A stretch of 64,000 bases of DNA from the NCBI GenBank assembly GCA_964057225.1, contig OZ059895.1, positions 18,228,001-18,292,000 of the forward strand, read 5' to 3'. The position numbers were made by a program, and so were the translations under genes. This document shows positions 23,901 through 64,000 of this stretch, piece by piece. Numbering within the stretch: position 1 is the first letter of the stretch; each line of letters begins with the position of its first letter. This stretch comes from Auanema rhodensis. Its lineage: Eukaryota; Animalia; Nematoda. The notes beneath the pieces are model-generated. The model was given only the letters and a program-made list of their open reading frames with translations, made no database searches and was not told where the DNA came from.

Positions 23901-25966
23901 AAATAGAAATTAATAGAATACTTTCTGTATTATGACGCTTGAAGCATTTCCAAATGTCATTATCTTCTACATTTTCAAAACAAAAAGGATTTCTGGAGAT
24001 ATGGGGAATTGAACCCCAGCCCTCTCCCATGCTAAGGGAGCGCTCTACCACTGAGCTATATCCCCACACATGTACGTGTTTCAAGTTCTTTATTCAAACC
24101 TTCAGTACTTCGAGACTATAAATGAAATATTGGAGATGAAACCAAGTGCTGTCTACGTTGTTTCAAATAGAAATTAATAGAATACTTTCTGTATTATGAC
24201 GCTTGAAGCATTTCCAAATGTCATTATCTTCTACATTTTCAAAACAAAAAGGATTTCTGGAGATATGGGGAATTGAACCCCAGCCCTCTCCCATGCTAAG
24301 GGAGCGCTCTACCACTGAGCTATATCCCCACACATGTACGTGTTTCAAGTTCTTTATTCAAACCCACAGTACCTCGAGACTATAAATGAAATATTGGAGG
24401 TGAAATCAAGTGCTGTCTACGTTGTTTCAAATAAAAATTAATAGAATACATTCTGTATTATGACGCTTGAAGCATTTCCCAATGTCATTATCTTCTACAT
24501 TTTCAAAACAAAAAGGATTTCTGGAGATATGGGGAATTGAACCCCAGCCCTCTCCCATGCTAAGGGAGCGCTCTACCACTGAGCTATATCCCCACACATG
24601 TATGTGTTTCAAGTTCTTTATTCAAACCTACAGTACCTCGAGACTATAAATGAAATATTGGAGGTGAAACCAAGTGCTGTCTAAGTTGTTTTAAATAGAA
24701 ACTAATAGAATACTTTCTGTATTATGACGCTTGAAGCATTTCCAAATGTCATTATCTTCTACATTTAAAAAACAAAAAAGATTTCTGGAGATATGGGGAA
24801 TTGAACCCCAGCCCTCTCCCATGCTAAGGGAGCGCTCTACCACTGAGCTATATCCCCACACATGTACGTGTTTCAAGTTCTTTATTCAAACCTTCAGTAC
24901 TTCGAGACTGTAAATGAAATATTGGAGGTGAAACCAAGTGCTGTCTACGTTGTTTCAAATAGAAATTAATAGAATACTTTCTGAATATTGACTCATGAAG
25001 CATTTCTTAATGTCATTATCTTCTACATTTTCAAAACAAAAAGGATTTCTGGAGATATGGGGAATTGAACCCCAGCCCTCTCCCATGCTAAGGGAGCGCT
25101 CTACCACTGAGCTATATCCCCACACATGTACGTGTTTCAAGTTCTTTATTCAAACCTTCAGTACTTCGAGACTATAAATGAAATATTGGAGGTGAAACCA
25201 AGTGCTGTCTACGTTGTTTCAAATAGAAATTAATAGAATACTTTCTGTATTATGACGCTTGAAGCATTTCTTAATGTCATTATCTTCTACTATTTCAAAA
25301 CAAAAAGGATTTCTGGAGATATGGGGAATTGAACCCCAGCCCTCTCCCATGCTAAGGGAGCGCTCTACCACTGAGCTATATCCCCACACATATACGTGTT
25401 TCAAGTTCTTTATTCAAACCTTCAGTACTTCGAGACTATAAATGAAATATTGGAGGTGAAATCAAGTGCTGTCTACGTTGTTTCAAATAAAAATAAATAG
25501 AATACTTTCTGTATTATGACGCTTGAAGCATTTCTTAATGTCATTATCTTCTACTATTTCAAAACAAAAAGGATTTCTGGAGATATGGGGAATTGAACCC
25601 CAGCCCTCTCCCATGCTAAGGGAGCGCTCTACCACTGAGCTATATCCCCACACATGTACGTGTTTCAAGTTCTTTATTCAAACCTTCAGTACTTCGAGAC
25701 TATAAATGAAATATTGGAGATGAAACCAAGTGCTGTCTACGTTGTTTCAAATAGAAATTAATAGAATACTTTCTGTATTATGACGCTTGAAGCATTTCCA
25801 AATGTCATTATCTTCTACATTTTCAAAACAAAAAGGATTTCTGGAGATATGGGGAATTGAACCCCAGCCCTCTCCCATGCTAAGGGAGCGCTCTACCACT
25901 GAGCTATATCCCCACACATGTACGTGTTTCAAGTTCTTTATTCAAACCCACAGTACCTCGAGACTG

Positions 25967-26311
25967 CGTTCCATTCGGACTCCCCATATATGTAGCTGAA
26001 GGGTTAGAGCCAGACGACCAGAGGACCGAGGAATGGCTCCGCCTTCCCTCGTTCCCTTGGTCGGGAGTTCGCCTCTTAGCAAGCTCATGGACGGCTTGTA
26101 GTTTAGTCTTTATACTTATATTTATCTTATTGTATTGTATCTTTATCTTTGTATATTATTGTTGTAGTTTCATGCCAATAAATCTTTCTCTCTTTTATCT
26201 TATGATTGACCTTATGCTCTTTATTCCTTACCGCTACACCAAGGAATACTATGCGCGTCATAGTATAAACTACAATGGTTTATATTATCGACGCAGGAGC
26301 GTAACGGAACG
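25967..26311 (+). repeat. 5' LTR of element 1
   Basis: CGTTCC...GGAACG terminal inverted repeat; contains AATAAA; direct repeat of 29156-29500. Confidence 0.95.
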
Positions 26312-26332
26312 TGGAGGTTCCACCTCGAACTC
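26312..26332 (+). promoter_or_regulatory. Primer-binding site, tRNA-Gln type (13-nt match, 5-nt gap, then T-arm match)
   Basis: TGGAGGTTCCACC-TCGAACTC compared with the complement of the eukaryotic tRNA-Gln 3' end (TGGAGGTTCCACCGAGATTYGAACTC). Confidence 0.85.
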
Positions 26333-28041
26333 ATCTTTTGAAAAAAAAAATTTTTTTTTTATTGTAAAAGTCCATTTTTGCATTCTAAATTATAAATTCC
26401 TCCACTTGAAACAACAAAATGAAGGCGCCAATTTGTTTTAAGGTACAGATACAAGGGATCTCGCTTAAATGCGAGATAGGACCCATAAAATTTTTGCCCG
26501 CCGTCCTCAATTTAAAACCGTCTGAATGTCCACCCTTTTCTATATCGTATCTTGTACCGCTTCTCATGCCATTTTGAGGACGTTTGGATTGAAATAGAGG
26601 ACACTTTCGCCAAACGAGAAATTATAATTGTTCACATTTTTTTTGGGCATAGAGAAGTTTGATTATCGGAACAAAAATTTAAAAGACGCGTGCAATTGAT
26701 TATAGTTTGTATATTTTGTGGTCAGGACTAGAATTTTGAAAAATTATTATATTCAGACGTAAAAGATCATTTTACATATTATTTTGCGGGAAACCAAAAA
26801 CGGTTACATAAATTGAATATAAAAAGAGACCACACTAGTCCGAAAAAGCCTGGTAAATCTGCATTAAGACTTCTCAGCTCTTATTTGACAGTCAGGTCAA
26901 GTTGGCGGAAGCATAACTGCTACGGATTTTATCCCCGTAGATTATGTCACCTTCCTCAAATCATTTCGTTGTTTCAACTCATAAGATACCCCTTATCTCC
27001 TACAGTAATCCTAAGTAAATGGGAAATGTTTAAAAATAGACGTATTTTTCTCATTTTCAAAAAGAAATTCGCTTAGGAAAACGCACTTTTGCTTATTTTG
27101 ATCAAGAAAAAGGACAGCCTTTTCAATAACTCTCCTCAAACCTCATTAGCATGCACAATGTCGAAAACATTTTGAGCAAAACATGCTATTTAAGGGAAAA
27201 AGAATGAGGAAAAGATTGAAAACATAAGTCCATTTTCTTGACGAAAACAGAGCAAAGCGCATAAAAATAAAAACACAGAGTACAAGCTTTATTCAGTCAA
27301 AATCCCCACTTGAAAGCTAGCTGTCTCTCAAACTCTGCAACAAGAGAGATAGGCTCGTAACTGGGGGTGAGGTATTCGGGATACTCTCTCCCCAGTGAGG
27401 CCCTCAGCTGCAATCCAAGCGAAGAGCTATCATAACATACATAAATTTTAAACAAAATTTTACATTATAATTCATAGAATAAAGGCTGCCTCTCGGTATA
27501 CCATCTCCAGGGACTTCCTACAAGTCCACACGGGAGAGCGGCATAAGAATGCGCGCAGAGGTCACGGAGGCAGAGACGCCCTACGAGCTCAATCTCGGGC
27601 GCAATTTCCGCCATAGCGGAAAAATTAACGAGGCCCCTGCCCAAATAGAACATTTGCAGATCCTCAATAAACTAAAATAGCAAAAGAAAATACTGAAATT
27701 GACTAATGCACCAACCATTAATACTATATCAGGATGGGGCCTATAAGCCAATCTCTCTTCAGCATCATAAAAGACAATAACGTCATACAGCTTTTGCATG
27801 ACAAAGGTCATTCCAGTAGGCTAGACGCTCATTTTTATGAATTCTTAGCTCTCAAAAATAATAAAATCTAGCTTGGTAAACAAGAGAAAAAATTGGGACA
27901 AAAACATGATTGAAAGCTACTAGTGAAGAGAGAAATTAAAGGATGTACAAGCGGAAAGTGCAAGAGCGGATAAAAATAGTTTTTGAGAAAAGATAAACAC
28001 CATTAACTATAATAAGCTTACGGTAGATAGGCGGAGTCAGA

Positions 28042-28515
28042 TTGTTGGCCAAAATTTGGAAAACTCCCTCTCATTTACCCTCCGCATCGCCCAGCGAAGC
28101 ACGAAAATCCTATTGCTCCCGAATCTTTCTCTCTCCCAACACACATCTAAAAGAATCTTACGCACCTTACGTCAACATCCCACACGTAGCTCACCATTCT
28201 CGGGTTTTCCAAACCAAGAGTCCTATAAAGGTGGCCAAAAGATTCTCATCGGCTTTCCGAGCCCTTTACCCGTCCGATACCAACAGTGACGCTACTGTCG
28301 CAAGTCGTCGCAGAAGCCGTACCCGACTTCTTAGTGTTCAAATAGAAAAACCGCACCAACCAGCCGAGAAGCCGAAGTCGCAAGTCGACCAGTTTTATAC
28401 TCCCCGAGAAGGAACATATTCACCTTCTGACGACACCTACGAAGATCCGGACTTCATCATAGCCGACGACAGAAAAATTTTTTATATACATTCTTTTCTT
28501 TTCTGTAGATTGTAA
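28042..28515 (+). other. 157-codon open frame inside element 1; no recognisable domain, possibly a decayed coding remnant
   Basis: Longest frame in the element; non-ATG start; S/P/R-rich with an acidic tail; no gag/pol motif seen. Confidence 0.25.
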
Positions 28516-29144
28516 AATGAAAGTAACGGTGAATTAGAAAAATTTTGATGAGAGATTAAGAGAATAAACAACCAAAAATAAGGAATAAGTGAAAATATAA
28601 TATAAATAATAGGCTACCGTACTTCTTTACGATGATAGAGATAGTCTATCGCACTAAATTGAGCTCCATATGTATCTCCAAGAAGAGACGAAAATTGGCA
28701 GGCGCCTAAGCCACACCCCATCTGAGTGGTAGCCTCCATTAGTACTCAAGGATTCATTCAGAGAGACACATGAAGACGAAAACAATTAATAACTAAAAAT
28801 CTTTATCCCCATCATCATTAGGATACGAGTAACCATGCACGCAAAAAGTTGAATAATTCCTTATTATCTCACATAAATCTCAAATTCATGGAACAATTTT
28901 TTTTTATTACAGTACTACAATGACTAAATTTATTTTTCTAATCCTCCGTTACAAAATAACATAAAACCCATTATTGTATTCAAATTCTATCTTAATACCA
29001 TAAAGAAACCTATTAATACCATTTAAATATCTTTCTACATGTAGATTTTAAAACTTTTAATTTTAATTGTAAACTCCTAGACTCTGAAACTCAGCTACAT
29101 ATACACTAAAAACTCTTTATATCGCGCGGACGCGAAAAATCTTT

Positions 29145-29155
29145 GAAAAAGGGCA
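29145..29155 (+). promoter_or_regulatory. Polypurine tract of element 1
   Basis: GAAAAAGGGCA immediately before the 3' LTR, preceded by the small hairpin TCGCG-CGGA-CGCGA. Confidence 0.7.
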
Positions 29156-29500
29156 CGTTCCATTCGGACTCCCCATATATGTAGCTGAAGGGTTAGAGCC
29201 AGACGACCAGAGGACCGAGGAATGGCTCCGCCTTCCCTCGTTTCCTTGGTCGGGAGTTCGCCTCTTAGCAAGCTCATGGACGGCTTGTAGTTTAGTCTTT
29301 ATACTTATATTTATCTTATTGTATTGTATCTTTATCTTTGTATATTATTGTTGTAGTTTCATGCCAATAAATCTTTCTCTCTTTTATCTTATGATTGACC
29401 TTATGCTCTTTATTCCTTACCGCTACACCAAGGAATACTATGCGCGTCATAGTATAAACTACAATGGTTTATATTATCGACGCAGGAGCGTAACGGAACG
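29156..29500 (+). repeat. 3' LTR of element 1
   Basis: Matches 25967-26311 except for one C/T difference (gttcccttgg versus gtttccttgg). Confidence 0.95.
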
Positions 29501-32500
29501 ACTGTAAATGAAATATTGGAGGTGAAACCAAGTGCTGTCTACGTTGTTTCAAATAGAAATTAATAGAATACTTTCTGAATATTGACTCATGAAGCATTTC
29601 TTAATGTCATTATCTTCTACATTTTCAAAACAAAAAGGATTTCTGGAGATATGGGGAATTGAACCCCAGCCCTCTCCCATGCTAAGGGAGCGCTCTACCA
29701 CTGAGCTATATCCCCACACATGTACGTGTTTCAAGTTCTTTATTCAAACCTTCAGTACTTCGAGACTATAAATGAAATATTGGAGGTGAAACCAAGTGCT
29801 GTCTACGTTGTTTCAAATAGAAATTAATAGAATACTTTCTGTATTATGACGCTTGAAGCATTTCTTAATGTCATTATCTTCTACTATTTCAAAACAAAAA
29901 GGATTTCTGGAGATATGGGGAATTGAACCCCAGCCCTCTCCCATGCTAAGGGAGCGCTCTACCACTGAGCTATATCCCCACACATGTACGTGTTTCAAGT
30001 TCTTTATTCAAACCTTCAGTACTTCGAGACTATAAATGAAATATTGGAGGTGAAATCAAGTGCTGTCTACGTTGTTTCAAATAAAAATTAAAAGAATACT
30101 TTCTGTATTATGACGCTTGAAGCATTTCCCAATGTCATTATCTTCTACATTTTCAAAACAAAAAGGATTTCTGGAGATATGGGGAATTGAACCCCAGCCC
30201 TCGCCCATGCTAAGGGAGCGCTCTACCACTGAGCTATATCCCCACACATGTACGTGTTTCAAGTTCTTTATTCAAACCTACAGTACCTCGAGACTATAAA
30301 TGAAATATTGGAGGTGAAACGAAGTGCTGTCTACGTTGTTTCAAATAGAAATTAATAGAATACTTTCTGTATATTGACTCATGAAGCATTTCTTAATGTC
30401 ATTATCTTCTACATTTTCAAAACAAAAAGGATTTCTGGAGATATGGGGAATTGAACCCCAGCCCTCTCCCATGCTAAGGGAGCGCTCTTCCACTGAGCTA
30501 TATCCCCACACATGTACGTGTTTCAAGTTCTTTATTCAAACCTTCAGTACTTCGAGACTATAAATGAAATATTGGAGGTGAAACCAAGTGCTGTCTACGT
30601 TGTTTTAAATAGAAATTAAAAGAATACTTTCTGTATTATGACGCTTGAAGCATTTCCCAATGTCATTATCTTCTACATTTTCAAAACAAAAAGGATTTCT
30701 GGAGATATGGGGAATTGAACCCCAGCCCTCTCCCATGCTAAGGGAGCGCTCTACCACTGAGCTATATCCCCACACATCTACGTGTTTCAAGTTCTTTATT
30801 CAAACCTACAGTACCTCGAGACTATAAATGAAATATTGGAGGTGAAACCAAGTGCTGTCTACGTTGTTTTAAATAAAAATTAATGGAATACTTTCTGTAT
30901 ATTGACTCATGAAGCATTTCTTAATGTCATTATCTTCTACATTTTCAAAACAAAAAGGATTTCTGGAGATATGGGGAATTGAACCCCAGACCTCTCCCAT
31001 GCGAAGGGAGCGCTCTACCACTGAGCTATATCCCCACACATGTACGTGTTTCAATTTCTTTATTCAAACCTACAGTACCTCGAGACTATAAATGAAATAT
31101 TGGAGGTAAAACCAAGTGCTGTCTACGTTGTTTTAAATAAAAATTAATGGAATACTTTCTGTATATTGACTCATGAAGCATTTCTTAATGTCATTATCTT
31201 CTACATTTTCAAAACAAAAAGGATTTCTGGAGATATGGGGAATTGAACCCCAGCCCTCTCCCATGCGAAGGGAGCGCTCTACCACTGAGCTATATCCCCA
31301 CACATGTACGTGTTTCAATTTCTTTATTCAAACCTACAGTACCTCGAGACTATAAATGAAATATTGGAGGTGAAACCAAGTGCTGTCTACGTTGTTTCAA
31401 ATAGAAATTAATAGAATACTTTCTGTATTATGACGCTTGAAGCATTTCCAAATGTCATTATCTTCTACATTTTCAAAACAAAAAAGATTTCTGGAGATAT
31501 GGGGAATTGAACCCCAGCCCTCTCCCATGCTAAGGGAGCGCTCTACCACTGAGCTATATCCCCACACATGTACGTGTTTCAAGTTCTTTATTCAAACCTA
31601 CAGTACCTCCAGACTATAAATGAAATATTGGAGGTGAAACCAAGTGCTGTCTACGTTGTTTTAAATAAAAATTAATGGAATACTTTCTGTATATTGACTC
31701 ATGAAGCATTTCTTAATGTCATTATCTTCTACATTTTCAAAACAAAAAGGATTTCTGGAGATATGGGGAATTGAACCCCAGCCCTCTCCCATGCTAAGGG
31801 AGCGCTCTACCACTGAGCTATATCCCCACACATCTACGTGTTTCAAGTTCTTTATTCAAACCTACAGTACCTCGAGACTATAAATGAAATATTGGAGGTG
31901 AAACCAAGTGCTGTCTACGTTGTTTTAAATAAAAATTAATGGAATACTTTCTGTATATTGACTCATGAAGCATTTCTTAATGTCATTATCTTCTACATTT
32001 TCAAAACAAAAAGGATTTCTGGAGATATGGGGAATTGAACCCCAGACCTCTCCCATGCGAAGGGAGCGCTCTACCACTGAGCTATATCCCCACACATGTA
32101 CGTGTTTCAATTTCTTTATTCAAACCTACAGTACCTCGAGACTATAAATGAAATATTGGAGGTAAAACCAAGTGCTGTCTACGTTGTTTTAAATAAAAAT
32201 TAATGAAATACTTTCTGTATATTGACTCATGAAGCATTTCTTAATGTCATTATCTTCTACATTTTCAAAACAAAAAGGATTTCTGGAGATATGGGGAATT
32301 GAACCCCAGCCCTCTCCCATGCTAAGGGAGCGCTCTACCACTGAGCTATATCCCCACACATGTACGTGTTTCAAGTTCTTTATTCAAACCTACAGTACCT
32401 CGAGACTATAAATGAAATATTGGAGGTGAAACCAAGTGCTGTCTACGTTGTTTTAAATAAAAATTAATGGAATACTTTCTGTATATTGACTCATGAAGCA

Positions 32501-34090
32501 TTTCTTAATGTCATTATCTTCTACATTTTCAAAACAAAAAGGATTTCTGGAGATATGGGGAATTGAACCCCAGACCTCTCCCATGCGAAGGGAGCGCTCT
32601 ACCACTGAGCTATATCCCCACACATGTACGTGTTTCAATTTCTTTATTCAAACCTACAGTACCTCGAGACTATAAATGAATTATTGGAGGTGAAACCAAG
32701 TGCTGTCTACGTTGTTTTAAATAAAAATTAATGGAATACTTTCTGTATATTGACTCATGAAGCATTTCTTAATGTCATTATCTTCTACATTTTCAAAACA
32801 AAAAGGATTTCTGGAGATATGGGGAATTGAACCCCAGCCCTCTCCCATGCTAAGGGAGCGCTCTACCACTGAGCTATATCCCCACACATGTACGTGTTTC
32901 AAGTTCTTTATTCAAACCTACAGTACCTCGAGACTATAAATGAAATATTGGAAGTGAAACCAAGTGCTGTCTACGTTGTTTCAAATAGAAATTAATAGAA
33001 TACTTTCTGTATTATGACGCTTGAAGCATTTCCAAATGTCATTATCTTCTACATTTTCAAAACAAAAAAGATTTCTGGAGATATGGGGAATTGAACCCCA
33101 GCCCTCTCCCATGCTAAGGGAGCGCTCTACCACTGAGCTATATCCCCACACATGTACGTGTTTCAAGTTCTTTATTCAAACCTTCAGTACTTCGAGACTA
33201 TAAATGAAATATTGGAGGTGAAATCAAGTACTGTCTACGTTGTTTCAAATAGAAATTAATAGAATACTTTCTGTATTATGACGCTTGAAGCATTTCCCAA
33301 TGTCATTATCTTCTACATTTTCAAAACAAAAAGGATTTCTGGAGATATGGGGAATTGAACCCCAGCCCTCTCCCATGCTAAGGGAGCGCTCTACCACTGA
33401 GCTATATCCCCACACATGTACGTGTTTCAAGTTCTTTATTCAAACCTTCAGTACTTCGAGACTATAAATGAAATATTGGAGGTGAAACCAAGTGCTGTCT
33501 ACGTTGTTTTAAATAGAAATTAATAGAATACTTTCTGTATTATGACGCTTGAAGCATTTCCCAATGTCATTATCTTCTACATTTTCAAAACAAAAAGGAT
33601 TTCTGGAGATATGGGGAATTGAACCCCAGCCCTCTCCCATGCTAAGGGAGCGCTCTACCACTGAGCTATATCCCCACACATGTACGTGTTTCAAGTTCTT
33701 TATTCAAACCTTCAGTACTTCGAGACTATAAATGAAATATTGGAGGTGAAACCAAGTGCTGTCTACGTTGTTTTAAATAGAAATTAATAGAATACTTTCT
33801 GTATTATGACGCTTGAAGCATTTCCCAATGTCATTATCTTCTACATTTTCAAAACAAAAAGGATTTCTGGAGATATGGGGAATTGAACCCCAGCCCTCTC
33901 CCATGCTAAGGGAGCGCTCTACCACTGAGCTATATCCCCACACATGTACGTGTTTCAAGTTCTTTATTCAAACCTTCAGTACTTCGAGACTATAAATGAA
34001 ATATTGGAGGTTAAATCAAGTGCTGTCTACGTTGTTTCAAATAGAAATTAATAGAATACTTTCTGTATTATGACGCTTGAAGCATTTCCC
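29501..34090 (-). repeat. tRNA-Ala tandem array, block 2 (17 tRNA genes, 29644-29715 to 33868-33939; 4 are CGC)
   Basis: Same 264-bp unit, resuming in phase after the ACTG TSD. Confidence 0.97.
30964..31035 (-). tRNA. tRNA-Ala(CGC)
   Basis: Anticodon loop TTCGCAT, variable loop AGGTC. Confidence 0.92.
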
Positions 34091-34315
34091 CTGATATAAC
34101 CACTTTTTATGCTCGTAAGGAATACTATATAAGGTTTCCTTACGAGTCCTTTGGGCTGCGACTAGGAATCATTATGTAACTTTCATTATTGTAATTTGTA
34201 TACTTTATCATGAATAAACCTTTCTCTCTATACTCTTTATCATTTATATTTGGAAGAAAAGAAAGTAATTCCATGTGGTTACCCAGCCGGAACCCTGGAG
34301 AACCACCATGGAACG
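34090..34315 (+). repeat. Truncated 5' LTR of element 2 (first ~187 nt missing)
   Basis: The array breaks at agcatttccc and joins mid-LTR at ctgatataacc. Ends in GGAACG. Contains TATATAA and AATAAA. Confidence 0.92.
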
Positions 34316-34336
34316 TGGAGGTTCCACCGAGATTCG
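34316..34336 (+). promoter_or_regulatory. Primer-binding site complementary to the tRNA-Gln 3' end
   Basis: TGGAGGTTCCACCGAGATTCG is the complement of ...CGAATCTCGGTGGAACCT-CCA. There is no spacer after the LTR. Confidence 0.92.
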
Positions 34337-34930
34337 TCTATAACCGACGAATCTCTAAGAACCATATTTCGCTACATAAATTTAATTTTGTTGTCTTTCA
34401 TACATCTAATTAAAGAATTATATTTCGATTATGCTATATGAATTTAATTTGAAGTCTTTCTCTTCTTTATTTCATTCATTCAAAGAACTTTTTTTTGATT
34501 TTGATTCATAAATTAATACTGAAATCTTATATACATTTATTTAAAAAAATATATTTTGAAACAACTTAATTTTGAAATTTTATATTCATTCATTTAAAAG
34601 AAACATTTCGATTTTTATCCATATTCTAAGATCTTTCATTCATTTTTGAGGAAAAACTTTGTTTATAACTATCATAAATTAATTTGAAATTCTTTTATAT
34701 TTATTCATTTAAAGAAAGGTATTTCGATATTTTTTTTTCTGTCAATCTTTTCTTTTTCTGTTTTTTTTAATCAAAATCTATTCTATCTCTTATAAATTTT
34801 TGTTATAAAGTTTCAAACAATTTTTGAATCAAAAATGAATTAATTTCTTTTATGAATCATCACAAAATTCATTGTTTTATATATATTAAAATTCATTAAT
34901 TTCTATTCTATCCTTTAAAATGTATTACTC

Positions 34931-34933
<3 letters not shown>

Positions 34934-35024
<91 letters not shown>
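34934..35024. repeat. (TA)n microsatellite, about 45 units, in the leader of element 2
   Basis: Uninterrupted TA run. Confidence 0.98.
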
Positions 35025-35028
<4 letters not shown>

Positions 35029-35804
35029 GTACAAAACTATTCTATACTAGTCCTATATTCCTACTATATTCCTACTATATTCCTATTTTATTTTTCTTTT
35101 ATCTTCTTTTAAATTTTATCTTTTTCCCTCTCTTATTACTATTATTTTTTCTCTTCTTCCTAATATAACCCAGAAAACAGCCAAATAATTTTGAAATTTT
35201 TTATCTGAATCCCGAACCTAAGATTTACAATTTTGCATTTTGATCCTAAAAGTAGCCCGTGAGAAGCAATACCAGACTGTCTCGAGAACTGAGCGGAGGC
35301 AACCACTATTTTTGATATAAGACGTACGCATTCCTGATTTTGAAGATCCCTTTTTGGTCCTATTTTTGCAAATTTGAAAATTACGACAGAATTAGTCGAG
35401 AATGAAAGTGTTAGAGTGGTCTCACCATGAAAAATCAGGGGAGCAGAATTTCGTTAAGGGAGCGATTTCTGTGATTTTTCATAGGCAAGAGAAGTCTGGG
35501 AAAGTGAATGTACGAGGCCTGAGCACCTAATCTTGTCGAAAGACTGAAAGGGAATACTGCTTAGATCACCGTCGTATATTTCACGCCTATTCGAGAGATG
35601 GGAACTTGATCCTAGAAAGGGCGCACCGGTCACAGGCCCGTGTATGTACCCGATTGAGCAATTCTCCGTTAGAAGATTCGCTGCAGGCTGGCCCCCTAGC
35701 AAGCGTCACGCATACAACCCCATATTGCCTCTCACGTTGTATATATATTTTTATAAGTTTCGCATCGTTGGTATAATAATTTCCTTTCCAGGAAAACCAA
35801 CAAG

Positions 35805-36543
35805 ATGACGGACTCGAAGAGTAAAAATCCTCCGCAGGATAAAACAAATCCACAGAGCGCAGCCCCCCGGTAATGATACGCACGTCGAGCCAGTACTCGA
35901 GCAGAATCAAAGAAAGAGAGGACCTCCAAATGTTTATGAGCCGGACACGAAGCGCCGACCTACTGCTGCAAAGAAACCACCCGCTATACCGGGTACCCCC
36001 GCGAAAAAAAATAGGCACAACAGCTATCAAAACTTCTCGCCACGCTATTACTCTTAGTAAAATTAAAACGTCTATTAACAAACAAACTCCTAAACGCAAT
36101 TCTAACGTTATCAAAAGCTCTAGCTATGTTAGCACAAATACTTCCCCTTGTAAAGATTATTCTCAAATATCATTTTCATACCCAAATACTGCTATTCTTT
36201 CTTCTCCTCTTCCTCGAAATTCACCAAACTATCAGAGAAAATAGAAGAAAACGCAAGAAAAGAATTGTATGAGGAACGGAAGAAGGAGCCACCCACAATT
36301 AAGAAATGAAGTTCAGCACTTAAATTGGCATTGGGATTAGAAGATAATTCTCCTACAACGCCAGCAAAGCCTTATCATGTGCCGATAAGGTATCACAGCA
36401 CCATACCAGTAACAGAGCCGAAGAAGAGAGTTTCGAAGAGTCAGATCCCGGACCCAAACTTCGTGGCACCAACAGTACCAGTCATCCATAAGAAAAGACC
36501 GTCAACAGTTATTGGGACTACAAGTAAGATGCTAGAACAATAG
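35805..36543 (+). pseudogene. gag: Frameshifted, internally deleted gag of element 2
   Basis: ATG at 35805 (MTDSKSKNPP). Fragments NQRKRGPPN, PAIPGTP, TTAIKTSRHAI, ILSSPLPRNSP and EDNSP..YHVPIRYH align with the element 3 Gag N-terminus in different frames. Homology stops just before the capsid region. Confidence 0.85.
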
Positions 36544-36908
36544 TAAAAATCCATAATTTCTATATAAAAATCACAAAAAGTATAATACCATTTTCATAAT
36601 TTTCATCTAAACTTGAACCTATATATGATTTTTTTTTCTCATTTAAGTGATACATAAAATTCTACACAAATTATTGTACATTTTTATTTTTTCACTCTCA
36701 TAAAAATATTGTATCAATAACCAAAATTTCAAAATAAAATTATACATCATACTTGGAATCTTTCAAAAATCACTGCAAAGTTTTAATCAACAATCTTCAT
36801 CATTTTTTTTCACCTAACTGGTCAAAAAGGAGGCGACAAAAAGGAAGGAACAGACCGACCTAGTTTTAAAAAGGATAAAAAGGACAGAAAACAGTAACAA
36901 AGATAACA

Positions 36909-37511
36909 ATGTCCACCCAACTCCCTGAAGCCGTCGAAATTCCCCTCATGATGGCCAAAAAGAGATGGCTTTCAATTCAACTATTAGTAAGAGAATTGAA
37001 GCAGCTAGGCGCCAATACCATCGCCAACCGCCCCAGGAAAGAGAAGATCCTGAAAGAGTTAGTTCAAGGACTAACAAGAGCGAACACCAGTACTGAAACG
37101 CTCAAAATCCTATGTTACCAATACGACAAGGATCAACTGTCGGAGGTTGACCACTGCATAGGACCATGGACCAACACAGCAGGAGTCATCCGAGATGCCA
37201 TTGCTGAACTAAGGGACCAACTAGGTTATTCACCTAGTTGCGATTCACCAGAACAGCAGACACCAAACTGGATTATTGCTGAGACCCATTCGGCCTATCA
37301 AGAATGGAGCCTGCAACATTGCAGCGAACTGCCATCCACAGAGGCAAGAAAAAGCATTTTAAATGCTCTACAAATATTTCTGGCATCACCAGCAACCACC
37401 AAGGAAGAAATGGAAAGAAAAACGGATTTATGCAACAAGACTATGGATCTTCTCCACGACCTAGGATCATCACCATTACCAGAGATACACCAGTATTATG
37501 AAGAATACTAA
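36909..37511 (+). CDS. 200-aa accessory ORF of unknown function, upstream of the 3' LTR
   Basis: Uninterrupted ATG-to-stop ORF, GC-richer than its AT-rich flanks, helical-looking composition, in the position used by extra ORFs of LTR elements. Confidence 0.7.
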   Translation: MSTQLPEAVEIPLMMAKKRWLSIQLLVRELKQLGANTIANRPRKEKILKELVQGLTRANTSTETLKILCYQYDKDQLSEVDHCIGPWTNTAGVIRDAIAELRDQLGYSPSCDSPEQQTPNWIIAETHSAYQEWSLQHCSELPSTEARKSILNALQIFLASPATTKEEMERKTDLCNKTMDLLHDLGSSPLPEIHQYYEEY

Positions 37512-56500: not shown

Positions 56501-58983
56501 GCTAAGGGAGCGCTCTACCACTGAGCTATATCCCCACACATGTACGTGTTTCAAGTTCTTTATTCAAACCTTCAGTACCTCGAGACTATAAATGAAATAT
56601 TGGAGGTAAAACCAAGTGCTGTCTACGTTGTTTCATATAAAAATCAATGGAATACTTTCTGTATTATGACTATTGAAGCATTTCTTAATGTCATTATCTT
56701 CTACATTTTCAAAACAAAAAGGATTTCTGGAGATATGGGGAATTGAACCCCAGCCCTCTCCCATGCTAAGGGAGCGCTCTACCACTGAGCTATATCCCCA
56801 CACATGTACGTGTTTCCAGTTCTTTATTGAAACCTACAGTACTTCGAGACTATAAATGAAATATTGGAGGTGAAACCAAGTGCTGTCTACGTTGTTTCAA
56901 TTGAAAATCAATGGGATACTTTCTGTATTATGACTCTTGAAGCATTTCTTAATGTCATTATCTTCTACATTTTTAAAACAAAAACGATTTCTGGAGATAT
57001 GGGGAATTGAACCCCAGCCCTCTCCCATGCTAAGGGAGCGCTCTACCACTGAGCTATATCCCCACACATGTACGTGTTTCAAGTTCTTTATTCAAACCTT
57101 CAGTACCTCGAGACTATAAATGAAATATTGGAGGTGAAACCAAGTGCTGTCTACGTTGTTTCATATAAAAATCAATGTAATACTTTCTGTATTATGACTC
57201 TTGAAGCATTTCTTAATGTCATTATCTTCTACATTTTTAAAACAAAAAGGATTTCTGGAGATATGGGGAATTGAACCCCAGCCCTCTCCCATGCTAAGGG
57301 AGCGCTCTACCACTGAGCTATATCCCCACACATGTACGTGTTTCAAGTTCTTTATTCAAACCTTCAGTACCTCGAGACTATAAATGAAATATTGGAGGTA
57401 AAACCAAGTGCTGTCTACGTTGTTTCAATTGAAAATCAATAGAATACTCTCTGTATTATGACTCTTGAAGCATTTCTTAATGTCATTATCTTCTACATTT
57501 TTAAAACAAAAAGGATTTCTGGAGATATGGGGAATTGAACCCCAGCCCTCTCCCATGCTAAGGGAGCGCTCTACCACTGAGCTATATCCCCACACATGTA
57601 CGTGTTTCAAGTTCTTTATTCAAACCTTCAGTACTTCGAGACTATAAATGAAATATTGGAGGTGAAACCAAGTGCTGTCTACGTTGTTTCATATAAAAAT
57701 CAATGTAATACTTTCTGTATTATGACTCTTGAAGCATTTCTTAATGTCATTATCTTCTACATTTTCAAAACAAAAAAGATTTCTGGAGATATGGGGAATT
57801 GAACCCCAGACCTCTCCCATGCTAAGGGAGCGCTCTACCACTGAGCTATATCACCACACATGTACGTGTTTCAAGTTCTTTATTCAAACCTTCAGTACCT
57901 CGAGACTATAAATGAAATATTGGAGGTGAAACCAAGTGCTGTCTACGTTGTTTCATATAAAAATCAATGTAATACTTTCTGTATTATGACTCTTGAAGCA
58001 TTTCTTAATGTCATTATCTTCTACATTTTTAAAACAAAAAGGATTTCTGGAGATATGGGGAATTGAACCCCAGCCCTCTCCCATGCTAAGGGAGCGCTCT
58101 ACCACTGAGCTATATCCCCACACATGTACGTGTTTCAAGTTCTTTATTCAAACCTTCAGTACTTCGAGACTATAAATGAAATATTGGAGGTGAAACCAAG
58201 TGCTGTCTACGTTGTTTCATATAAAAATCAATGTAATACTTTCTGTATTATGACTCTTGAAGCATTTCTTAATGTCATTATCTTCTACATTTTCAAAACA
58301 AAAAAGATTTCTGGAGATATGGGGAATTGAACCCCAGACCTCTCCCATGCGAAGGGAGCGCTCTACCACTGAGCTATATCCCCACACATGTACGTGTTTC
58401 AATTTCTTTATTCAAACCTACAGTACCTCGAGACTATAAATGAAATATTGGAGGTGAAACCAAGTGCTGTCTACGTTGTTTCAATTGAAAATCAATGGGA
58501 TACTTTCTGTATTATGACTCTTGAAGCATTTCTTAATGTCATTATCTTCTACATTTTCAAAACAAAAAGGATTTCTGGAGATATGGGGAATTGAACCCCA
58601 GCCCTCTCCCATGCTAAGGGAGCGCTCTACCACTGAGCTATATCCCCACACATGTACGTGTTTCAAGTTCTTTATTCAAACCTTCAGTACTTCGAGACTA
58701 TAAATGAAATATTGGAGGTGAAACCAAGTGCTGTCTACGTTATTTCAGATAGAAAATAATAGAATAATCTCTGTATTATGACGCTTGAAGCATTTTCCAA
58801 TGTCGTCATTTTCTACATTTTCAAAACAAAAAAGATTTCTGGAGATATGGGGAATTGAACCCCAGCCCTCTCCCATGCTAAGGGAGCGCTCTACCACTGA
58901 GCTATATCCCCACACATGTACGTGTTTCTAGTTCTTTATTGAAACCTACAGTACTTCGAGACTATAAATGAAAAATTGGAGGT

Positions 58984-59392
58984 CGTTCCATGGTGGTTCC
59001 CCAGGGTTCCGGCTGGGTAACCACATGGAATTATTTTCTTTTCTTCCAAATATAAATGATAAAGAGTATAGAGAGAAAGGTTTATTCATGATAAAGTATA
59101 CAAATTACAATAATAAAAGTTACATAATGATTCCTAGTCGCAGCCCAAAGGACTCGTAAGGAAACCTTATATAGTATTCCTTACGAGCATAAAAAGTGGT
59201 TATATCAGGTCCGCGGAACTTGGTTCCGCTTGAATTGGGCTTTCTTTAATTAAACTTAATATGAAAAAGTGTTCGTTCATTGTTGCATTGAATTCCTGTT
59301 TCTCAAATGTAGCGTCAGCTATTTGTTTTTATAATGTTCCGTTTTATAAGCGATTGACGTTGTCAATCGCTCTACTTATAGGACACGTATGG
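58984..59392 (-). repeat. 3' LTR of element 3 (about 99% identical to the element 2 LTR; lacks its first 4 nt)
   Basis: Reverse complement matches 37719-38127 with about 4 mismatches. Confidence 0.93.
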
Positions 59393-61148
59393 CTCCTCGT
59401 TTGCCAATGCAGAGTTGATAGGTGTTATCTGCCTGGCAAGGTATCATAGATAGGGCGATGACGGATAAGAATAGCGGTATGAACGGAAGTGTCTTCTTTG
59501 TTTTGACTGTTCCCTTTTCTACTTTGTTAACGTGAAAACGGACGCTGGGGCTTCTTGTGCGATCTCTGTGCCTGTTATGTGGTCCATATGAAGTGCTGCG
59601 ATTTCGTTGTTGAAATCCGCGATCAGGACAGTTTCCGCGGTTGTATCGGTCGTTTCCTCTGTGCTCCTGTCGATCGTTCCTTCTGCTATCATATCGATCG
59701 TTTCCTCTGCTGTTGTATCGATCATTGTATCTATCGTACCGTTGGGGGCTACGATAATTGTTGTATCCTCGTTGATATCCATTGTTTCTGTTATCCTGTC
59801 TGAAGTTGTGACGGTTATTTTGTCGATCCTCTTGGTATCTTGGTGAGCGGTATCCTCCTCTTCTTTGATTCCATTGCTCTTGTGGTTGTTGTGGTCTTGA
59901 TTGATTTCCATAGAATGTTATTGATTGGTGTGTTTGTGATCCGTCATAGATTTTCTCCTGTTGTGATGCTCTCATGTGGTTTATGAGACCATTATTAATC
60001 TCTAGTTGTTCCACGTCTTTAATCAAGTTGTTGACCAAGAGCGAAGGATCCTCGTCAGCTTCCACAGTTTCGGCAATAGTCACGGCTGCATCAAAGGTGA
60101 TAGGGCTGCGGTTATTGACATGTGTTCTTAAAGTCTTTCGTAGTCCTCCTAAGAATGAAACTCGTAGTATTCTTTCATCGGCTGTCGAGTCCATGTTGCA
60201 TGATTCATAGGCAAGGTTTCTGCAGCGTTGAGCGAAATTTTGTACCGTTTCGTGCTCTCCTTGTTTCAAATGAGTGAGTTTTGTGAATGCTGCATCTCTC
60301 TTTTCTGGAGGTTGTAATTTCTCCGATAGTATGCGTTTGACGTGGTTCCATCCCTGGCGTAAGTCTTCTGCTGGTATAGTTCGAAGAGCTTCAGCGGCTC
60401 TATCCGTTCCGAGAAGTAGATAGAGATGGGAAAGTCTCTCGGCAATAGGGACTTGAAGGGCATCGAAATATCCTTCTAGTCTTTGCATGTAGAGGTTGAA
60501 TGGAACCGATCCATCATAAAGCGTAGGTTTGTGATGGCGAATAGAAACGTTGTGGGCTCTTGCAATAGGAGAGTTGTCTTGCTCCATCTGCTCTGCCATT
60601 TGAGGGCGACTTCTCTGCTCTGTAACATTCGAAGTCAAATTTACGTTATTGTCTGACGAAGAAGAGACAGGAGACAGAGAGTGCCCGTGCAAAGATTGAT
60701 CAGTGGAAGAGGGAGAGTTTCTAGGAATAGGAGAGGTGAGGATTTCCGCATTTGCGGTTTGAACAAGGCGTTGAGGAGAAGTGTGATTTGGAGGACAAGT
60801 GTTAGTGCCGGTATTAACAACTGTTTTTGGAGAGTGAGAAGAGCGTTTGGGCGTAGATTTACTGGATGATGTTTTATTCTTATTCAAGCTAATTGCATGC
60901 CTAGTAGTTTTAATAGCAGTAGTATAAAGTTTCTTAGCAGTTAGCGGTGTACCCGGAATAGGGGGTAATTTCTTTGATTTCGCGTTCGTTTTCGGATATT
61001 TCGCATCTGGTCGGAATGCATCCGGTGGTCCTCTTTTTCTTTGGTTTCTATGCAGTGCTGCTTCCACTGTCTGAGTTTTCTCTGCGCTATTCGTAGCATT
61101 TTGGGCAATATTTCCCGGCGGAGGATTTTGATTCGCTGCGTCAGCCAT
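59376..61148 (-). CDS. gag: Gag-like polyprotein (590 aa), truncated by fusion to the 3' LTR
   Basis: Capsid-like KPTLYDGSVPFNLYMQRLEGYF; major-homology-like LKQGEHETVQNFAQRCRNLA; FLGGLR...PITFDAAVTIAETVE; R/N/D/Y-rich basic tail. The last residues (IRVL*) come from LTR sequence. No protease, RT or integrase motif. Confidence 0.88.
   Translation of the reverse strand: MADAANQNPPPGNIAQNATNSAEKTQTVEAALHRNQRKRGPPDAFRPDAKYPKTNAKSKKLPPIPGTPLTAKKLYTTAIKTTRHAISLNKNKTSSSKSTPKRSSHSPKTVVNTGTNTCPPNHTSPQRLVQTANAEILTSPIPRNSPSSTDQSLHGHSLSPVSSSSDNNVNLTSNVTEQRSRPQMAEQMEQDNSPIARAHNVSIRHHKPTLYDGSVPFNLYMQRLEGYFDALQVPIAERLSHLYLLLGTDRAAEALRTIPAEDLRQGWNHVKRILSEKLQPPEKRDAAFTKLTHLKQGEHETVQNFAQRCRNLAYESCNMDSTADERILRVSFLGGLRKTLRTHVNNRSPITFDAAVTIAETVEADEDPSLLVNNLIKDVEQLEINNGLINHMRASQQEKIYDGSQTHQSITFYGNQSRPQQPQEQWNQRRGGYRSPRYQEDRQNNRHNFRQDNRNNGYQRGYNNYRSPQRYDRYNDRYNSRGNDRYDSRRNDRQEHRGNDRYNRGNCPDRGFQQRNRSTSYGPHNRHRDRTRSPSVRFHVNKVEKGTVKTKKTLPFIPLFLSVIALSMIPCQADNTYQLCIGKRGAIRVL
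59641..59735 (-). repeat. Degenerate 24-nt (8-aa) coding minisatellite in the Gag tail
   Basis: NDRYNSRG-NDRYDSRR-NDRQEHRG-NDRYNRGN. Confidence 0.8.
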
Positions 61149-62253
61149 CTTTGTTGGTTTCCTGGAAGGAAATTATTAACCAACAAAGACTGAGCTTATA
61201 TTATACAAAACGTAAGAGACAATATGGGGTTGGTATGCGCGACTCCTGTTCCTGTCAGGGGGCCAGCCTGCAGCGGGTCTCTAGTCGGAGAATAGCCTGG
61301 TCAGGTTCATACACGAGTCCGCAACTACGTGTGACCTTTAGTAAAGGACCAAGTTCTTATCTCTCGAAGAGGCATGAGATATGAGACAGTGGTCTGTGTA
61401 TTGCTCCTTTTCAGTCATGGACAAGATCAGGTACACAGGCTTCTCATACTCACTTTTCCAGACTTCTCTTACCTAAGCAAACCCCCAAAAGACGTTCCCT
61501 TTTAACGTTACTTCTGTTCCCCTGGGTCTTGCTAGGTGGGACCACTCAACTTCAAAATATTCTTTAATTCTCATATGGGACCAAAAAGGGTTAATTTCAA
61601 ATGATTGCGCGTCTTATATCAAAAAGTGTACGCCTCCGCGCGATGTCCCGAGAATGTCTGGTATTGTTTCTTACGGGGCTTTCTCATAAAAATGCGTTAG
61701 ATATCAAGAATAGTGGTTTTGTTTATGAATCAATGTTTTCAGAATGATTTATGAATAGATTTTCAAAATTAGCTTGTGATAAGAAGTTTTCAAGATGACT
61801 TATGGGTAAGTGTTGCAATATGAATAAATGTCTTTAAGATATTTCATGAATTGATAGTTTTTAATATTATTCGTGGTTAAATATTTTAATATGCTTGTTC
61901 CAAAAAGAGTTTTTATGCATTATATGCTTTTAACATACAGGAAAGTAGAGGAATAAAGTAGGAATATAGATTGTAATAGATAATATGTATAAGACATTTT
62001 TTTCAAATAGATATATCAGAAATGATGTTAGAAGAATGATATTTAGAGATAAATTCGAATTACTAGATTAAATTGAAGTTTTTGTTTTAGATACAAAATT
62101 GACTTGAAAGTTTGAAATATTAAATTAAATTAGAATTTTGGATATGAAATCAAGATAAATTTTTAGAGTAGAAATAGATTTCAAAGAAAGAGAAAGTAAT
62201 TTAAAGGTGAGAAAAGTAGCGGCAATGGTCCATAGAGATTCGTCCCTTATAGA

Positions 62254-62274
62254 CGAATCTCGGTGGAACCTCCA
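62254..62274 (-). promoter_or_regulatory. Primer-binding site, tRNA-Gln
   Basis: Minus strand TGGAGGTTCCACCGAGATTCG, identical to the element 2 PBS and abutting the LTR. Confidence 0.92.
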
Positions 62275-62613
62275 CGTTCCATATTGGTTCCTAGGGTTCC
62301 GGCTAGGTAACCATATGGACTTTAATAGTGTGAATGCCATTGTAAAAGTAACAGAGAGTAGAGAAAAAGAAGTTTATTCAGAATATGGAAATACAATTAT
62401 AAAAGCAAAATACAATAATCAAATAAATGAAACTACATGTTATGAGAAAGCCAACCTAGTTGCTTTCTCAGGGGTTTATATAGCAAAATATTAATTACAA
62501 ATATAATTGAATTTATACCAAAAGTAGTTCAGGTCTAGTTTCTTATTGAATTCTATTAACCAAAAGTCGGTTGACGTTGTCAACCGCCTTCTTTATAAGA
62601 CACGTATGGAACA
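62275..62613 (-). repeat. 5' LTR of element 3 (339 bp, a diverged LTR subtype)
   Basis: Begins TGTTCCATACGTGTC and ends GGAACG. Shares the termini, U3 hairpin, TATATAA, AATAAA and U5 motif with the element 2 LTR, but the body differs. Confidence 0.9.
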
Positions 62614-64000
62614 AGGTAAAACCAAGTGCATTATGACGCTTGAAGCATTTTCCAATGTCGTCATTTTCTACATTTTCAAAACAAAAAAGATTTCTGGAGA
62701 TATGGGGAATTGAACCCCAGCCCTCTCCCATGCGAAGGGAGCGCTCTACCTTTGAGCTATATCCCCACACATGTACGTGTTTCAAGTTCTTTATTCAAAC
62801 CTACAGTACTTCGAGACTATAAATGAAAAATTGGAGGTAAAACCAAGTGCATTATGACGCTTGAAGCATTTTCCAATGTCGTCATTTTCTACATTTTCAA
62901 AACAAAAAAGATTTCTGGAGATATGGGGAATTGAACCCCAGCCCTCTCCCATGCTAAGGGAGCGCTCTACCACTGAGCTATATCCCCACACATGTACGTG
63001 TTTCCAGTTCTTTATTGAAACCTACAGTACTTCGAGACTATAAATGAAATATTGGAGGTAAAACTAAGTGCTGTCTACGTTGTTTCAATTGAAAATCAAT
63101 GGGATACTTTCTGTATTATGACGCTTGAAGCATTTTCCAATGTGGTAGTCTTCTACATTTTCAAAACAAAAAGGATTTCTGGAGATATGGGGAATTGAAC
63201 CCCAGCCCTCTCCCATGCGAAGGGAGCGCTCTACCTTTGAGCTATATCCCCACACATGTACGTGTTTCAAGTTCTTTATTCAAACCTACAGTACTTCGAG
63301 ACTATAAATGAAAAATTGGAGGTAAAACCAAGTGCATTATGACGCTTGAAGCATTTTCCAATGTCGTCATTTTCTACATTTTCAAAACAAAAAAGATTTC
63401 TGGAGATATGGGGAATTGAACCCCAGCCCTCTCCCATGCTAAGGGAGCGCTCTACCACTGAGCTATATCCCCACACATGTACGTGTTTCCAGTTCTTTAT
63501 TGAAACCTACAGTACTTCGAGACTATAAATGAAATATTGGAGGTAAAACTAAGTGCTGTCTACGTTGTTTCAATTGAAAATCAATGGGATACTTTCTGTA
63601 TTATGACGCTTGAAGCATTTTCCAATGTGGTAGTCTTCTACATTTTCAAAACAAAAAAGATTTCTGGAGATATGGGGAATTGAACCCCAGCCCTCTCCCA
63701 TGCTAAGGGAGCGCTCTACCACTGAGCTATATCCCCACACATGTACGTGTTTCCAGTTCTTTATTGAAACCTACAGTACTTCGAGACTATAAATGAAATA
63801 TTGGAGGTAAAACCAAGTGCTGTCTACGTTGTTTCAATTGAAAATCAATGGGATACTTTCTGTATTATGACTCTTGAAGCATTTCTTAATGTCATTATCT
63901 TCTACATTTTCAAAACAAAAAGGATTTCTGGAGATATGGGGAATTGAACCCCAGCCCTCTCCCATGCGAAGGGAGCGCTCTACCACTGAGCTATATCCCC
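62614..64000 (-). repeat. tRNA-Ala tandem array, block 4 (6 tRNA genes; mixed 221-bp and 264-bp units; 3 are CGC)
   Basis: tRNAs begin at plus-strand positions 62695, 62916, 63180, 63401, 63665 and 63929. The short units lack 43 bp of spacer. Confidence 0.95.

Follow-up and report, generated by a model that had tools for sequence, protein, structure and literature searches.

Three Related LTR Retrotransposons at Neighboring Positions in the Spacer of a Tandem tRNA-Ala Array

Results

The tRNA-Ala array

The window (the whole 64,000-nucleotide stretch of DNA analyzed) is a single head-to-tail array of tRNA-Ala genes on the minus strand, about 200 in all (ARAGORN: 200, AGC/CGC). The genes are spaced 264 bp apart (ARAGORN), the unit consisting of a 72-nt gene, as delimited by Rfam (e.g., 25842-25913), and a 192-bp spacer. 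TRF finds the 264-bp period across positions 1-58983, and a sub-array in which units of 221 and 264 bp alternate runs from about 62614 on. A periodicity scan of the window found only three large breaks in the array, each an LTR element (E1, E2, and E3). The tRNA-Ala genes look functional, judging from their scores on Rfam (69-71 bits) and from the G3:U70 pair, the A and B boxes, and the T-run terminator evident on direct reading. Counting upstream from nucleotide 1 of the tRNA, AT content within the spacer peaks in a TATA-like 15-mer at -52 to -66. Array variants differ between the two sides of an element.

1-64000, minus strand: tandem tRNA-Ala (AGC/CGC) array (ARAGORN, TRF, periodicity scan, Rfam)
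25842-25913, minus strand: tRNA-Ala gene with E1 upstream (Rfam, 69.5 bits)
58840-58911, minus strand: tRNA-Ala gene with E3 upstream (ARAGORN)

Three LTR elements

E1 has two LTRs and a target site duplication (TSD).

25967-29500, plus strand: E1, family A, nonautonomous LTR element of 3534 bp (LTR pair and TSD)
25963-25966 (left) and 29501-29504 (right): TSD of E1, ACTG, at -50 to -53 from tRNA nt 1 (25913)
25967-26311, plus strand: 5' LTR, 345 bp, 344/345 identical to the 3' LTR
26312-26324, plus strand: primer binding site (PBS), TGGAGGTTCCACC, complementary to the 3' end of tRNA-Gln
29145-29153, plus strand: purine tract, GAAAAAGGG, ending 2 nt (CA) before the 3' LTR
29156-29500, plus strand: 3' LTR, 344/345 identical to the 5' LTR

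An ORF and similarity search of E1 found nothing similar to gag or pol, the longest ORF being at most 157 aa. The element sits in a minority variant of the array unit, one with ACTG, carried by 8 of 195 units.

E2 is truncated at its 5' end.

34090-38127, plus strand: E2, family B, 5'-truncated LTR element (LTR and array comparison)
34006-34088: array segment left of E2, repeating 38127-38209 right of E2 at 90% identity
34090-34315, plus strand: 5' LTR remnant, last 226 of 413 bp, without the first 186 bp
34316-34336, plus strand: PBS of 21 nt, tRNA-Gln primer site
35884-36226, plus strand: gag remnant (tblastn against E3 gag)
36909-37511, plus strand: intact ORF of 200 aa, matched by nothing in family and homologue searches
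37715-38127, plus strand: full 3' LTR, family B, followed by GAGG
38128-38131: GAGG at the right junction, unit phase -68 to -71

The gag remnant corresponds to about aa 28-146 of E3 gag (53-59% identity, over two reading frames), and in the same tblastn comparison the capsid domain is absent from it. The purine tract is weak. At the left junction (34089/34090), the LTR remnant meets the array at phase -149. We rejected this as an integration junction: 186 bp of the LTR are missing, the phase is wrong, and 83 bp of array occur on both sides of E2 (34006-34088 and 38127-38209), so that the left flank is out of phase. The left end reflects a later deletion, in which 186 bp of LTR were lost along with the target tRNA. 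E2 therefore yields one junction only, the tRNA downstream of its insertion being gone.

E3 carries the only intact gag among the three.

58984-62613, minus strand: E3, gag-only LTR element with unlike LTRs (PBS, gag, TSD)
58980-58983 (left) and 62614-62617 (right): TSD of E3, AGGT, at -69 to -72 from tRNA nt 1 (58911)
58984-59392, minus strand: 3' LTR, family B type, 405/409 identical to the E2 3' LTR, without the first 4 nt
59376-61148, minus strand: gag ORF, 590 aa, with a Retrotrans_gag domain at aa 248-337
62254-62274, minus strand: PBS, tRNA-Gln, 21 nt (sequence match)
62275-62613, minus strand: 5' LTR, family C, 339 bp, about 80% similar to family B, at the ends only

The final codons of the gag ORF extend into the LTR, and an ORF and similarity search of the element found no pol after it. 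Since PBS and gag lie on the minus strand, E3 is oriented opposite to E1 and E2. Its two LTRs belong to different families (C at the 5' end, B type at the 3' end); a later exchange of LTRs at the DNA level has reshaped the element.

Clade and relatives

With 345-bp LTRs flanked by ACTG in E1, flanking AGGT in E3, and a 413-bp 3' LTR with a 226-bp remnant of its partner in E2, the three are real LTR-retrotransposon insertions and independent events. An identity of 98.7-99.7% within LTR pairs marks the insertions as young. The LTRs of families A, B, and C begin and end alike, (T/C)GTTCCAT...GGAACG, and directly after each 5' LTR comes the PBS TGGAGGTTCCACC(GAGATTCG), matching the 3' end of tRNA-Gln; a 19-mer spanning the LTR end and PBS is identical in all three families. 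The use of tRNA-Gln as primer has been described (PMC7744096). Common termini, a common primer site, and TSDs of 4 bp show that the three LTR types form one clade.

No ORF or similarity corresponding to pol (PR-RT-RNaseH-IN), integrase included, was found in E1, E2, or E3, which are thus nonautonomous derivatives, assigned to Ty3/gypsy from gag alone. The E3 gag ORF matches PF03732 at 27.3 bits (cutoff 24.1) and has 93 distant relatives, of which one or more is a gag-PR-RT-RH-IN polyprotein; a relative matches Ty3_capsid. The nearest named relative comes from a Caenorhabditis assembly, and this, with the gypsy-type gag and the 4-bp TSDs, makes an animal host plausible. The protein and DNA collections searched contained no further copies of families A, B, or C and no autonomous partner. 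They did contain one related LTR, in a metagenome contig (L003). It shares its termini and PBS with families A, B, and C, its target is TTTA, and the flanking sequence is unrelated to the array. Rfam finds nothing inside E1-E3 (E1 and E2 scanned at the gathering threshold only), and the LTRs carry no tRNA-like sequence.

The earlier note had proposed a tRNA-gene-targeted LTR family. The proposal stands insofar as the insertions are real and independent, belong to one clade, and cluster narrowly in the spacer, but no tRNA gene lies within 12.9 kb of the related LTR in L003. Nor was there a tRNA gene close to the distant gag relatives retrieved.

Positions of the junctions

The insertions had been described as lying close together upstream of tRNA-Ala, and they do: the junctions fall at -50 to -72, and the sites spread over no more than 19 bp of the unit. 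Individual positions also agree with those first given, for E1 (both copies of ACTG, measured from nt 1 at 25913), for E2 (GAGG following a right LTR that ends at 38127), and for E3 (both copies of AGGT, the opposite orientation being evident from its PBS and gag). As claimed, no junction of E1-E3 lies in a tRNA or its T-run terminator. As for offsets by family, that of -50 rests on a single copy of family A, and that of -70 on two or three junctions for families B and C.

The clustering is nominally unusual. Under a model of uniform insertion, applied post hoc to n=3, the chance that three independent sites fall within 19 bp is p=0.016 over all 264 positions, 0.031 over the 192 of the spacer, and 0.058 over 140. 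The E2 and E3 events are 1 bp apart (p about 0.011), with the third site 18 bp off. Perhaps integration was nearly random, the array acting as a large neutral sink and the clustering a coincidence. The pattern was indeed spotted after the fact, p rises to about 0.06 if insertion is permitted in only some 140 bp of the spacer, and LTR sequence takes up eleven of the window's 64 kb, which is ordinary for many eukaryotic genomes. Still, two events within 1 bp and a third 18 bp away remain unusual, and all come from one clade; we consider coincidence unlikely.

The elements do not share one nucleotide site in one orientation: ACTG (-50) contrasts with GAGG/AGGT (-68 to -72), and both orientations occur. 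This bears on the idea that the elements home to the spacer as Dewa does, recognizing a DNA motif of the unit rather than Pol III machinery. E2 and E3 do lie within one 5-bp stretch, GAGGT, E1 chose the rare ACTG variant, and animal tRNA arrays have spacer-specific elements (PMC3706591). Yet the orientations are opposite, family A uses a different sequence from B/C, the L003 relative lies in unrelated sequence, and the elements described as strictly sequence-specific are, with few exceptions, non-LTR elements and Dada (PMC3706591). Homing of this kind seems very improbable.

Discussion

Our preferred reading, with a probability of roughly 0.4, is that three recent, independent, nonautonomous insertions of Ty3/gypsy type came to similar positions owing, most simply, to local properties of the unit. 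An integrase from an unseen autonomous relative would mobilize E1-E3 in trans, making a 4-bp staggered cut, and the array would tolerate the insertions because any single unit is dispensable. The cuts of E1 (-50 to -53) and of E2 and E3 (-68 to -72) bracket the AT-rich tract, whose edges may be what determines the site, perhaps reinforced by phased chromatin; the rare ACTG variant at E1 hints that local sequence matters there. Later, at the DNA level, E2 was reshaped by the deletion on its left and E3 by the LTR exchange. Against this reading, the argument from the AT tract is post hoc, and the targets (ACTG, GAGG, ACCT, and TTTA in L003) have no common motif. The clustering (p about 0.016-0.06) is equally expected from a tether to Pol III, one clade supplies all transposable element insertions in 64 kb, and E2 and E3 lie in opposite orientations 1 bp apart, at a site without palindromic symmetry, which position-based targeting fits better.

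In such targeting, placed by the earlier note just outside the TFIIIB footprint, the autonomous partner's integrase would dock on TFIIIB, TFIIIC, or some subunit of Pol III at active tRNA genes. The cut would fall a short way upstream of the complex, near -50 for A or -70 for B/C, in either orientation. Every scorable junction lies upstream of the gene within -50 to -72 (p 0.016-0.058 against uniform insertion), the symmetry argument just given applies, three related families are the sole transposable elements in the array, the genes look functional, and there are precedents in Ty3, Ty1, DGLT-A, and TRE5-A (PMC5911963, PMC5006619). On the other hand, there are three cases at a single locus, the window contains no integrase, the L003 relative lies away from tRNA genes, and the sites bracket an AT-rich tract. 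Moreover, in an array of near-identical units, distance to the tRNA cannot be told apart at all from primary sequence or nucleosome phase, and positions -50/-70 upstream of one gene are equally +142/+122 downstream of the next. The prior is also low, reviews (PMC5911963, PMC5006619, PMC3706591) mentioning no animal tRNA-targeted LTR family. We therefore regard Pol III-directed integration as rather unlikely. Equally doubtful is the broader proposition that this tRNA-Gln-primed, gypsy-type clade with 4-bp TSDs is the first Pol III-tethered LTR lineage beyond yeasts and dictyostelids, possibly an animal one, inserting about 50 or 70 bp upstream in either orientation with giant arrays as safe harbor.

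Known systems offer partial parallels. Ty3 of Saccharomyces cerevisiae (Metaviridae) is like E1-E3 in being of Ty3/gypsy type (Retrotrans_gag in E3 gag, Ty3_capsid in a relative). Acting through TFIIIB, it places its cut where Pol III starts, within a few bp of the gene; its TSDs are 5 bp long and its primer is initiator tRNA-Met. E1-E3 differ, with their sites at -50 and -70, 4-bp TSDs, tRNA-Gln primer, and no integrase. Ty3 inserts upstream of tRNA genes in both orientations and leaves the genes undisrupted (PMC5911963). The dictyostelid Ty3/gypsy elements DGLT-A and Skipper-2 are LTR elements with narrow windows of distance to tRNA genes, about 13-33 bp upstream and about 100 bp downstream, respectively, but across many dispersed genes (PMC5006619) rather than one array. 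Dictyostelium TRE5-A matches the offset of E1, inserting about 50 bp upstream of tRNA genes (PMC3159450, PMC5006619), but it is a non-LTR element that works by a different mechanism, target-primed reverse transcription. Ty1 (Pseudoviridae) also inserts on the upstream side of Pol III genes. Nucleosomes and contact between integrase and AC40 direct it to sites beyond the TFIIIB footprint (PMC7459421), but it belongs to the copia superfamily, with a broad periodic window (up to about 750 bp) and 5-bp TSDs. Among animal elements of tRNA arrays or genes are Dada DNA transposons and zebrafish Dewa, a non-LTR element of the Tx1 clade that occupies the spacer of tandem tRNA-Leu genes (PMC3706591); these recognize sequence and are not LTR elements. 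The nonautonomous LTR elements LARD/TRIM and Helenus likewise lack pol and are mobilized in trans, with 4-bp TSDs in animal examples (PMC10886601), but differ from E1-E3, which are 3.5-4 kb long and whose LTRs are free of tRNA-like sequence.

Three cases inside one repeat hint at tRNA-directed integration but cannot prove it, and the earlier note was right to call n=3 suggestive only. If targeting by Pol III were true, an LTR element would have acquired tRNA-gene targeting independently once more, in a lineage with no case described in the reviews (PMC5911963, PMC5006619, PMC3706591) and with offsets (-50 and -70) unlike those of Ty3 or DGLT-A. Such targeting would also provide a natural integrase targeting module for safe-harbor delivery. 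E1-E3 furnish a precisely delimited LTR probe for each of the three families (A, B, and C), and the locus illustrates cleanly the colonization of a tRNA satellite by LTR elements, complete with LTR exchange, deletion of units, and array variants specific to a flank.

The array and its interruptions

Three young, non-autonomous gypsy-type LTR elements, all of one previously unsampled clade, interrupt the tandem tRNA-Ala array. ARAGORN finds 200 tRNA-Ala genes in the window, every one on the minus strand and spaced at 264 bp, with anticodons AGC and CGC. Tandem Repeats Finder describes a single 264-bp array at 1-58983 and, at the right end of the window, a sub-array in which 221- and 264-bp units alternate with a period of 485 bp. 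The genes are 72 nt long, and complete ones score 61-71 bits in Rfam (e.g., 25842-25913). Direct reading reveals a G3:U70 pair, discriminator A, and both A and B boxes, with a T5 run a few nucleotides past the 3' end, and by these features of their sequence the genes look functional. GC content is about 37% across the whole window. We do not regard the contig as human. In a scan of 264-bp self-identity, the large interruptions number only three, the remaining anomalies being 1-bp indels or the 221-bp variant. The observation of three LTR insertions in the array is real and well described.

LTR elements in the array (target-site duplications, TSDs, are counted upstream from tRNA nt 1)
25967-29500, plus strand: element E1, LTR pair with TSD
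25963-25966 and 29501-29504: E1 TSD ACTG, at -50 to -53 from nt 1 (25913) of the tRNA gene to the left
34090-38127, plus strand: element E2, full 3' LTR and partial 5' LTR
58984-62613, minus strand: element E3, LTRs with TSD
58980-58983 and 62614-62617: E3 TSD AGGT, at -69 to -72 from nt 1 at 58911

The array itself is heterogeneous. AGC and CGC genes are intermixed in higher-order repeat patterns, such as a motif of roughly 10 units on the left side of E1. The anticodon loop is defective in one unit (47489-47561), and a few repeats measure 263 bp. Unit variants are unlike on either side of elements (34006-38209; 58650-64000), the GAAACAAAG variant is confined to the array right of E2, and the alternating 221/264-bp sub-array starts one unit left of E3.

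One clade with three LTR types

The LTRs fall into families A (E1), B (E2), and C (the 5' LTR and body of E3), which are one clade with three LTR types. Family A has almost no sequence similarity to B or C. All three LTR types start with (T/C)GTTCCAT and end with GGAACG, an identical primer-binding site (PBS) directly follows the LTR, and the duplications are 4 bp throughout, the typical length for gypsy-like elements of animals (PMC10886601). Families B and C are sisters: their leaders and gag N-termini are about 75% identical, their LTR ends about 80%.

Of the 21 positions of the primer site, 20 agree with the reverse primer used on mammalian tRNA-Gln(CTG) (PMC7744096). The reverse complement of the family B LTR end holds GTTCCATGGTG, nt 2-12 of tRNA-Gln (34296-34336, 38103-38127, 58984-59010), and this end adjoins a PBS complementary to the 3' end of that tRNA-Gln, so the terminal inverted repeat of the LTR mirrors the acceptor stem of the primer. 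A U5/PBS hairpin folds no better than shuffled sequence, and Rfam detects no small-RNA-like sequence inside the elements.

Structure and history of the elements

The LTRs of E1, of which the 5' copy occupies 25967-26311, are 345 bp each and identical at 344 of 345 positions. Directly 3' of its 5' LTR lies TGGAGGTTCCACC, and GAAAAAGGG precedes the 3' LTR with 2 nt (CA) between. Its longest ORF is at most 157 aa, and nothing in the element matches Pfam or resembles the E3 gag. The unit that received E1 carries a minority ACTG variant (8 of 195 units), the other seven instances of which lie in the 14 kb to the left (11969-24904). The variant replaces the usual ACTA, turning TATAAAT into TGTAAAT.

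E2 retains a complete 3' LTR of 413 bp (37715-38127) and only the final 226 bp of its 5' LTR. At the right junction, the LTR end abuts GAGG at unit phase -68 to -71. At the left junction, LTR position 187 meets the array at phase -149; a stretch of 83 bp of array occurs on either side of E2. This is explained most simply by a later deletion of 368 bp or more, comprising 186 bp of LTR and no less than 182 bp of array. Lost with it were the LTR start, the left TSD made at insertion, and the tRNA gene downstream of the insertion point. Within E2, a remnant of the gag N-terminus is divided over two reading frames. An intact 200-aa ORF (36909-37511, plus strand) has no Pfam family, no detectable homologue, and no record in an exact-protein look-up; it could be a captured gene, an accessory gene, or a chance ORF. 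The leader contains a (TA)47 microsatellite (34934-35028).

In E3, gag is 590 aa long and includes a Retrotrans_gag domain, and pol is absent. The element's 3' LTR (58984-59392) is identical to the E2 LTR at 405 of 409 positions, the first 4 nt missing, while its 5' LTR (62275-62613), unlike the 3' one, is of family C. The gag ORF extends past the junction and terminates inside the family B LTR (59376-59392); the join is 4 nt in from the LTR start, beside a purine-rich stretch. Reverse transcription copies both LTRs from the same parts of the template. This scheme of retroviral replication rules out template switching as the source of the unlike LTRs, which must therefore stem from exchange at the level of DNA after integration. 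Unlike LTRs would also result if two separate insertions at one and the same position had been joined by unequal crossing-over, but the left and right flanks of E3 together restore one rare unit variant otherwise present only in the right-hand sub-array. Because of this, a single insertion followed by LTR exchange is the simplest history, and two insertions a less simple one. With E3 taken as a single insertion, the independent events number three.

Relatives elsewhere

Close relatives of the E3 gag, sought with the whole ORF and with its core region, are absent from a word-indexed set of 5.8 billion proteins. An exhaustive search of representative proteins gave 93 distant matches at no more than 37% identity, of the Ty3/gypsy gag kind and including one complete gag-PR-RT-RH-IN polyprotein. 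The sole match from a named genome adjoins a DUF1280 gene in NCBI assembly GCA_000149515.1, which we take to be from Caenorhabditis. Taken with the 4-bp TSD, this match makes an animal host plausible. A distant gag relative in that assembly (P0009, on DS268445.1, 10001-16742, contig L006 of those fetched here) is annotated as a single 1726-aa product in which gag and RNase H are combined with a glycoprotein-B/fusion-like stretch, an arrangement suggestive of a gypsy-like element with an envelope gene in a nematode assembly. Exact-protein look-ups of the E3 gag and of the two commonest array ORFs returned no record, and a gag search of viral contigs found no match.

A 19-mer that spans the LTR end and the PBS and is common to all three families was sought in metagenome, viral, and prokaryote-genome collections, giving one genuine related LTR and two other matches. 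The related LTR occupies 9673-10085 of a eukaryote-like metagenome contig (L003, Ga0126342_10016451). It starts with TGTTCCATAC and ends with GGAACG; next come the same tRNA-Gln PBS and then a 10-bp minisatellite. LTR termini are therefore conserved across hosts. The contig holds no second LTR, and ARAGORN finds no tRNA in its 12.9 kb. The other two are chance matches in prokaryote-type, high-GC sequence, one reading as a coding region (L004) and one in a Thermocatellispora contig (L005).

Contigs of distant gag relatives were also fetched (L001, L002, and L006-L009). The four that were scanned (L001, L002, L006, and L007) contain no tRNA genes, and the primer site is absent from the two checked for it (L001 and L002). 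These tRNA-free relatives count against tRNA targeting throughout the clade, though weakly, since they are distant and few.

What sets the recurrent position?

An earlier note proposed Pol III-targeted integration from three junctions upstream of tRNA-Ala genes, and its coordinates are all correct: ACTG at -50 to -53 for E1, GAGG at -68 to -71 for the right end of E2, and AGGT at -69 to -72, in the opposite orientation, for E3. By simulation, three sites fall within a 19-bp span with p = 0.016 if all 264 unit positions are permissive, 0.031 if 192 are (spacer only), and 0.058 if 140 are; for two events within 1 bp, p is about 0.011. The clustering is suggestive, but the comparison is post hoc and n=3; coincidence is judged rather unlikely.

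Several observations favor targeting by position. E2 and E3 are inserted 1 bp apart and point in opposite directions, and their target lacks dyad symmetry; no motif is shared among the four targets ACTG, GAGG, ACCT, and TTTA (the last from L003); and every TE insertion in the 64 kb comes from this single clade. Homing to a specific sequence of this spacer is hard to credit. Tethering by Pol III is conceivable but rather doubtful. The array units are nearly identical, so that distance from the tRNA, primary sequence, and phased chromatin are one and the same variable. In a head-to-tail array, sites at -50 and -70, upstream of one gene, lie at the same time downstream of its neighbour, at +142 and +122, and some elements do target tRNA genes about 100 bp on the downstream side (PMC5006619). 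The reviews consulted mention tRNA-directed LTR elements for yeasts and dictyostelids only (PMC5911963, PMC5006619), and for animal tRNA arrays or genes a review mentions only non-LTR (Dewa) and DNA (Dada) elements (PMC3706591).

The most AT-rich 15-mer of the spacer, -52 to -66, includes TATAAAT; E1 cuts at its proximal edge, E2 and E3 at its distal edge. Cuts at the edges of the tract would be explicable by local DNA flexibility or by a TBP-containing complex bound there. The leading account, with a probability of about 0.4, is that the recurrent position reflects a preference for local features of DNA or chromatin in a satellite that tolerates insertions.

After E1, E2, and E3 had inserted into spacer sequence of this giant tRNA-Ala array, deletion and LTR exchange modified the set. 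Within the array, the insertions may be barriers to homogenisation, or they may be markers of recombination joints.
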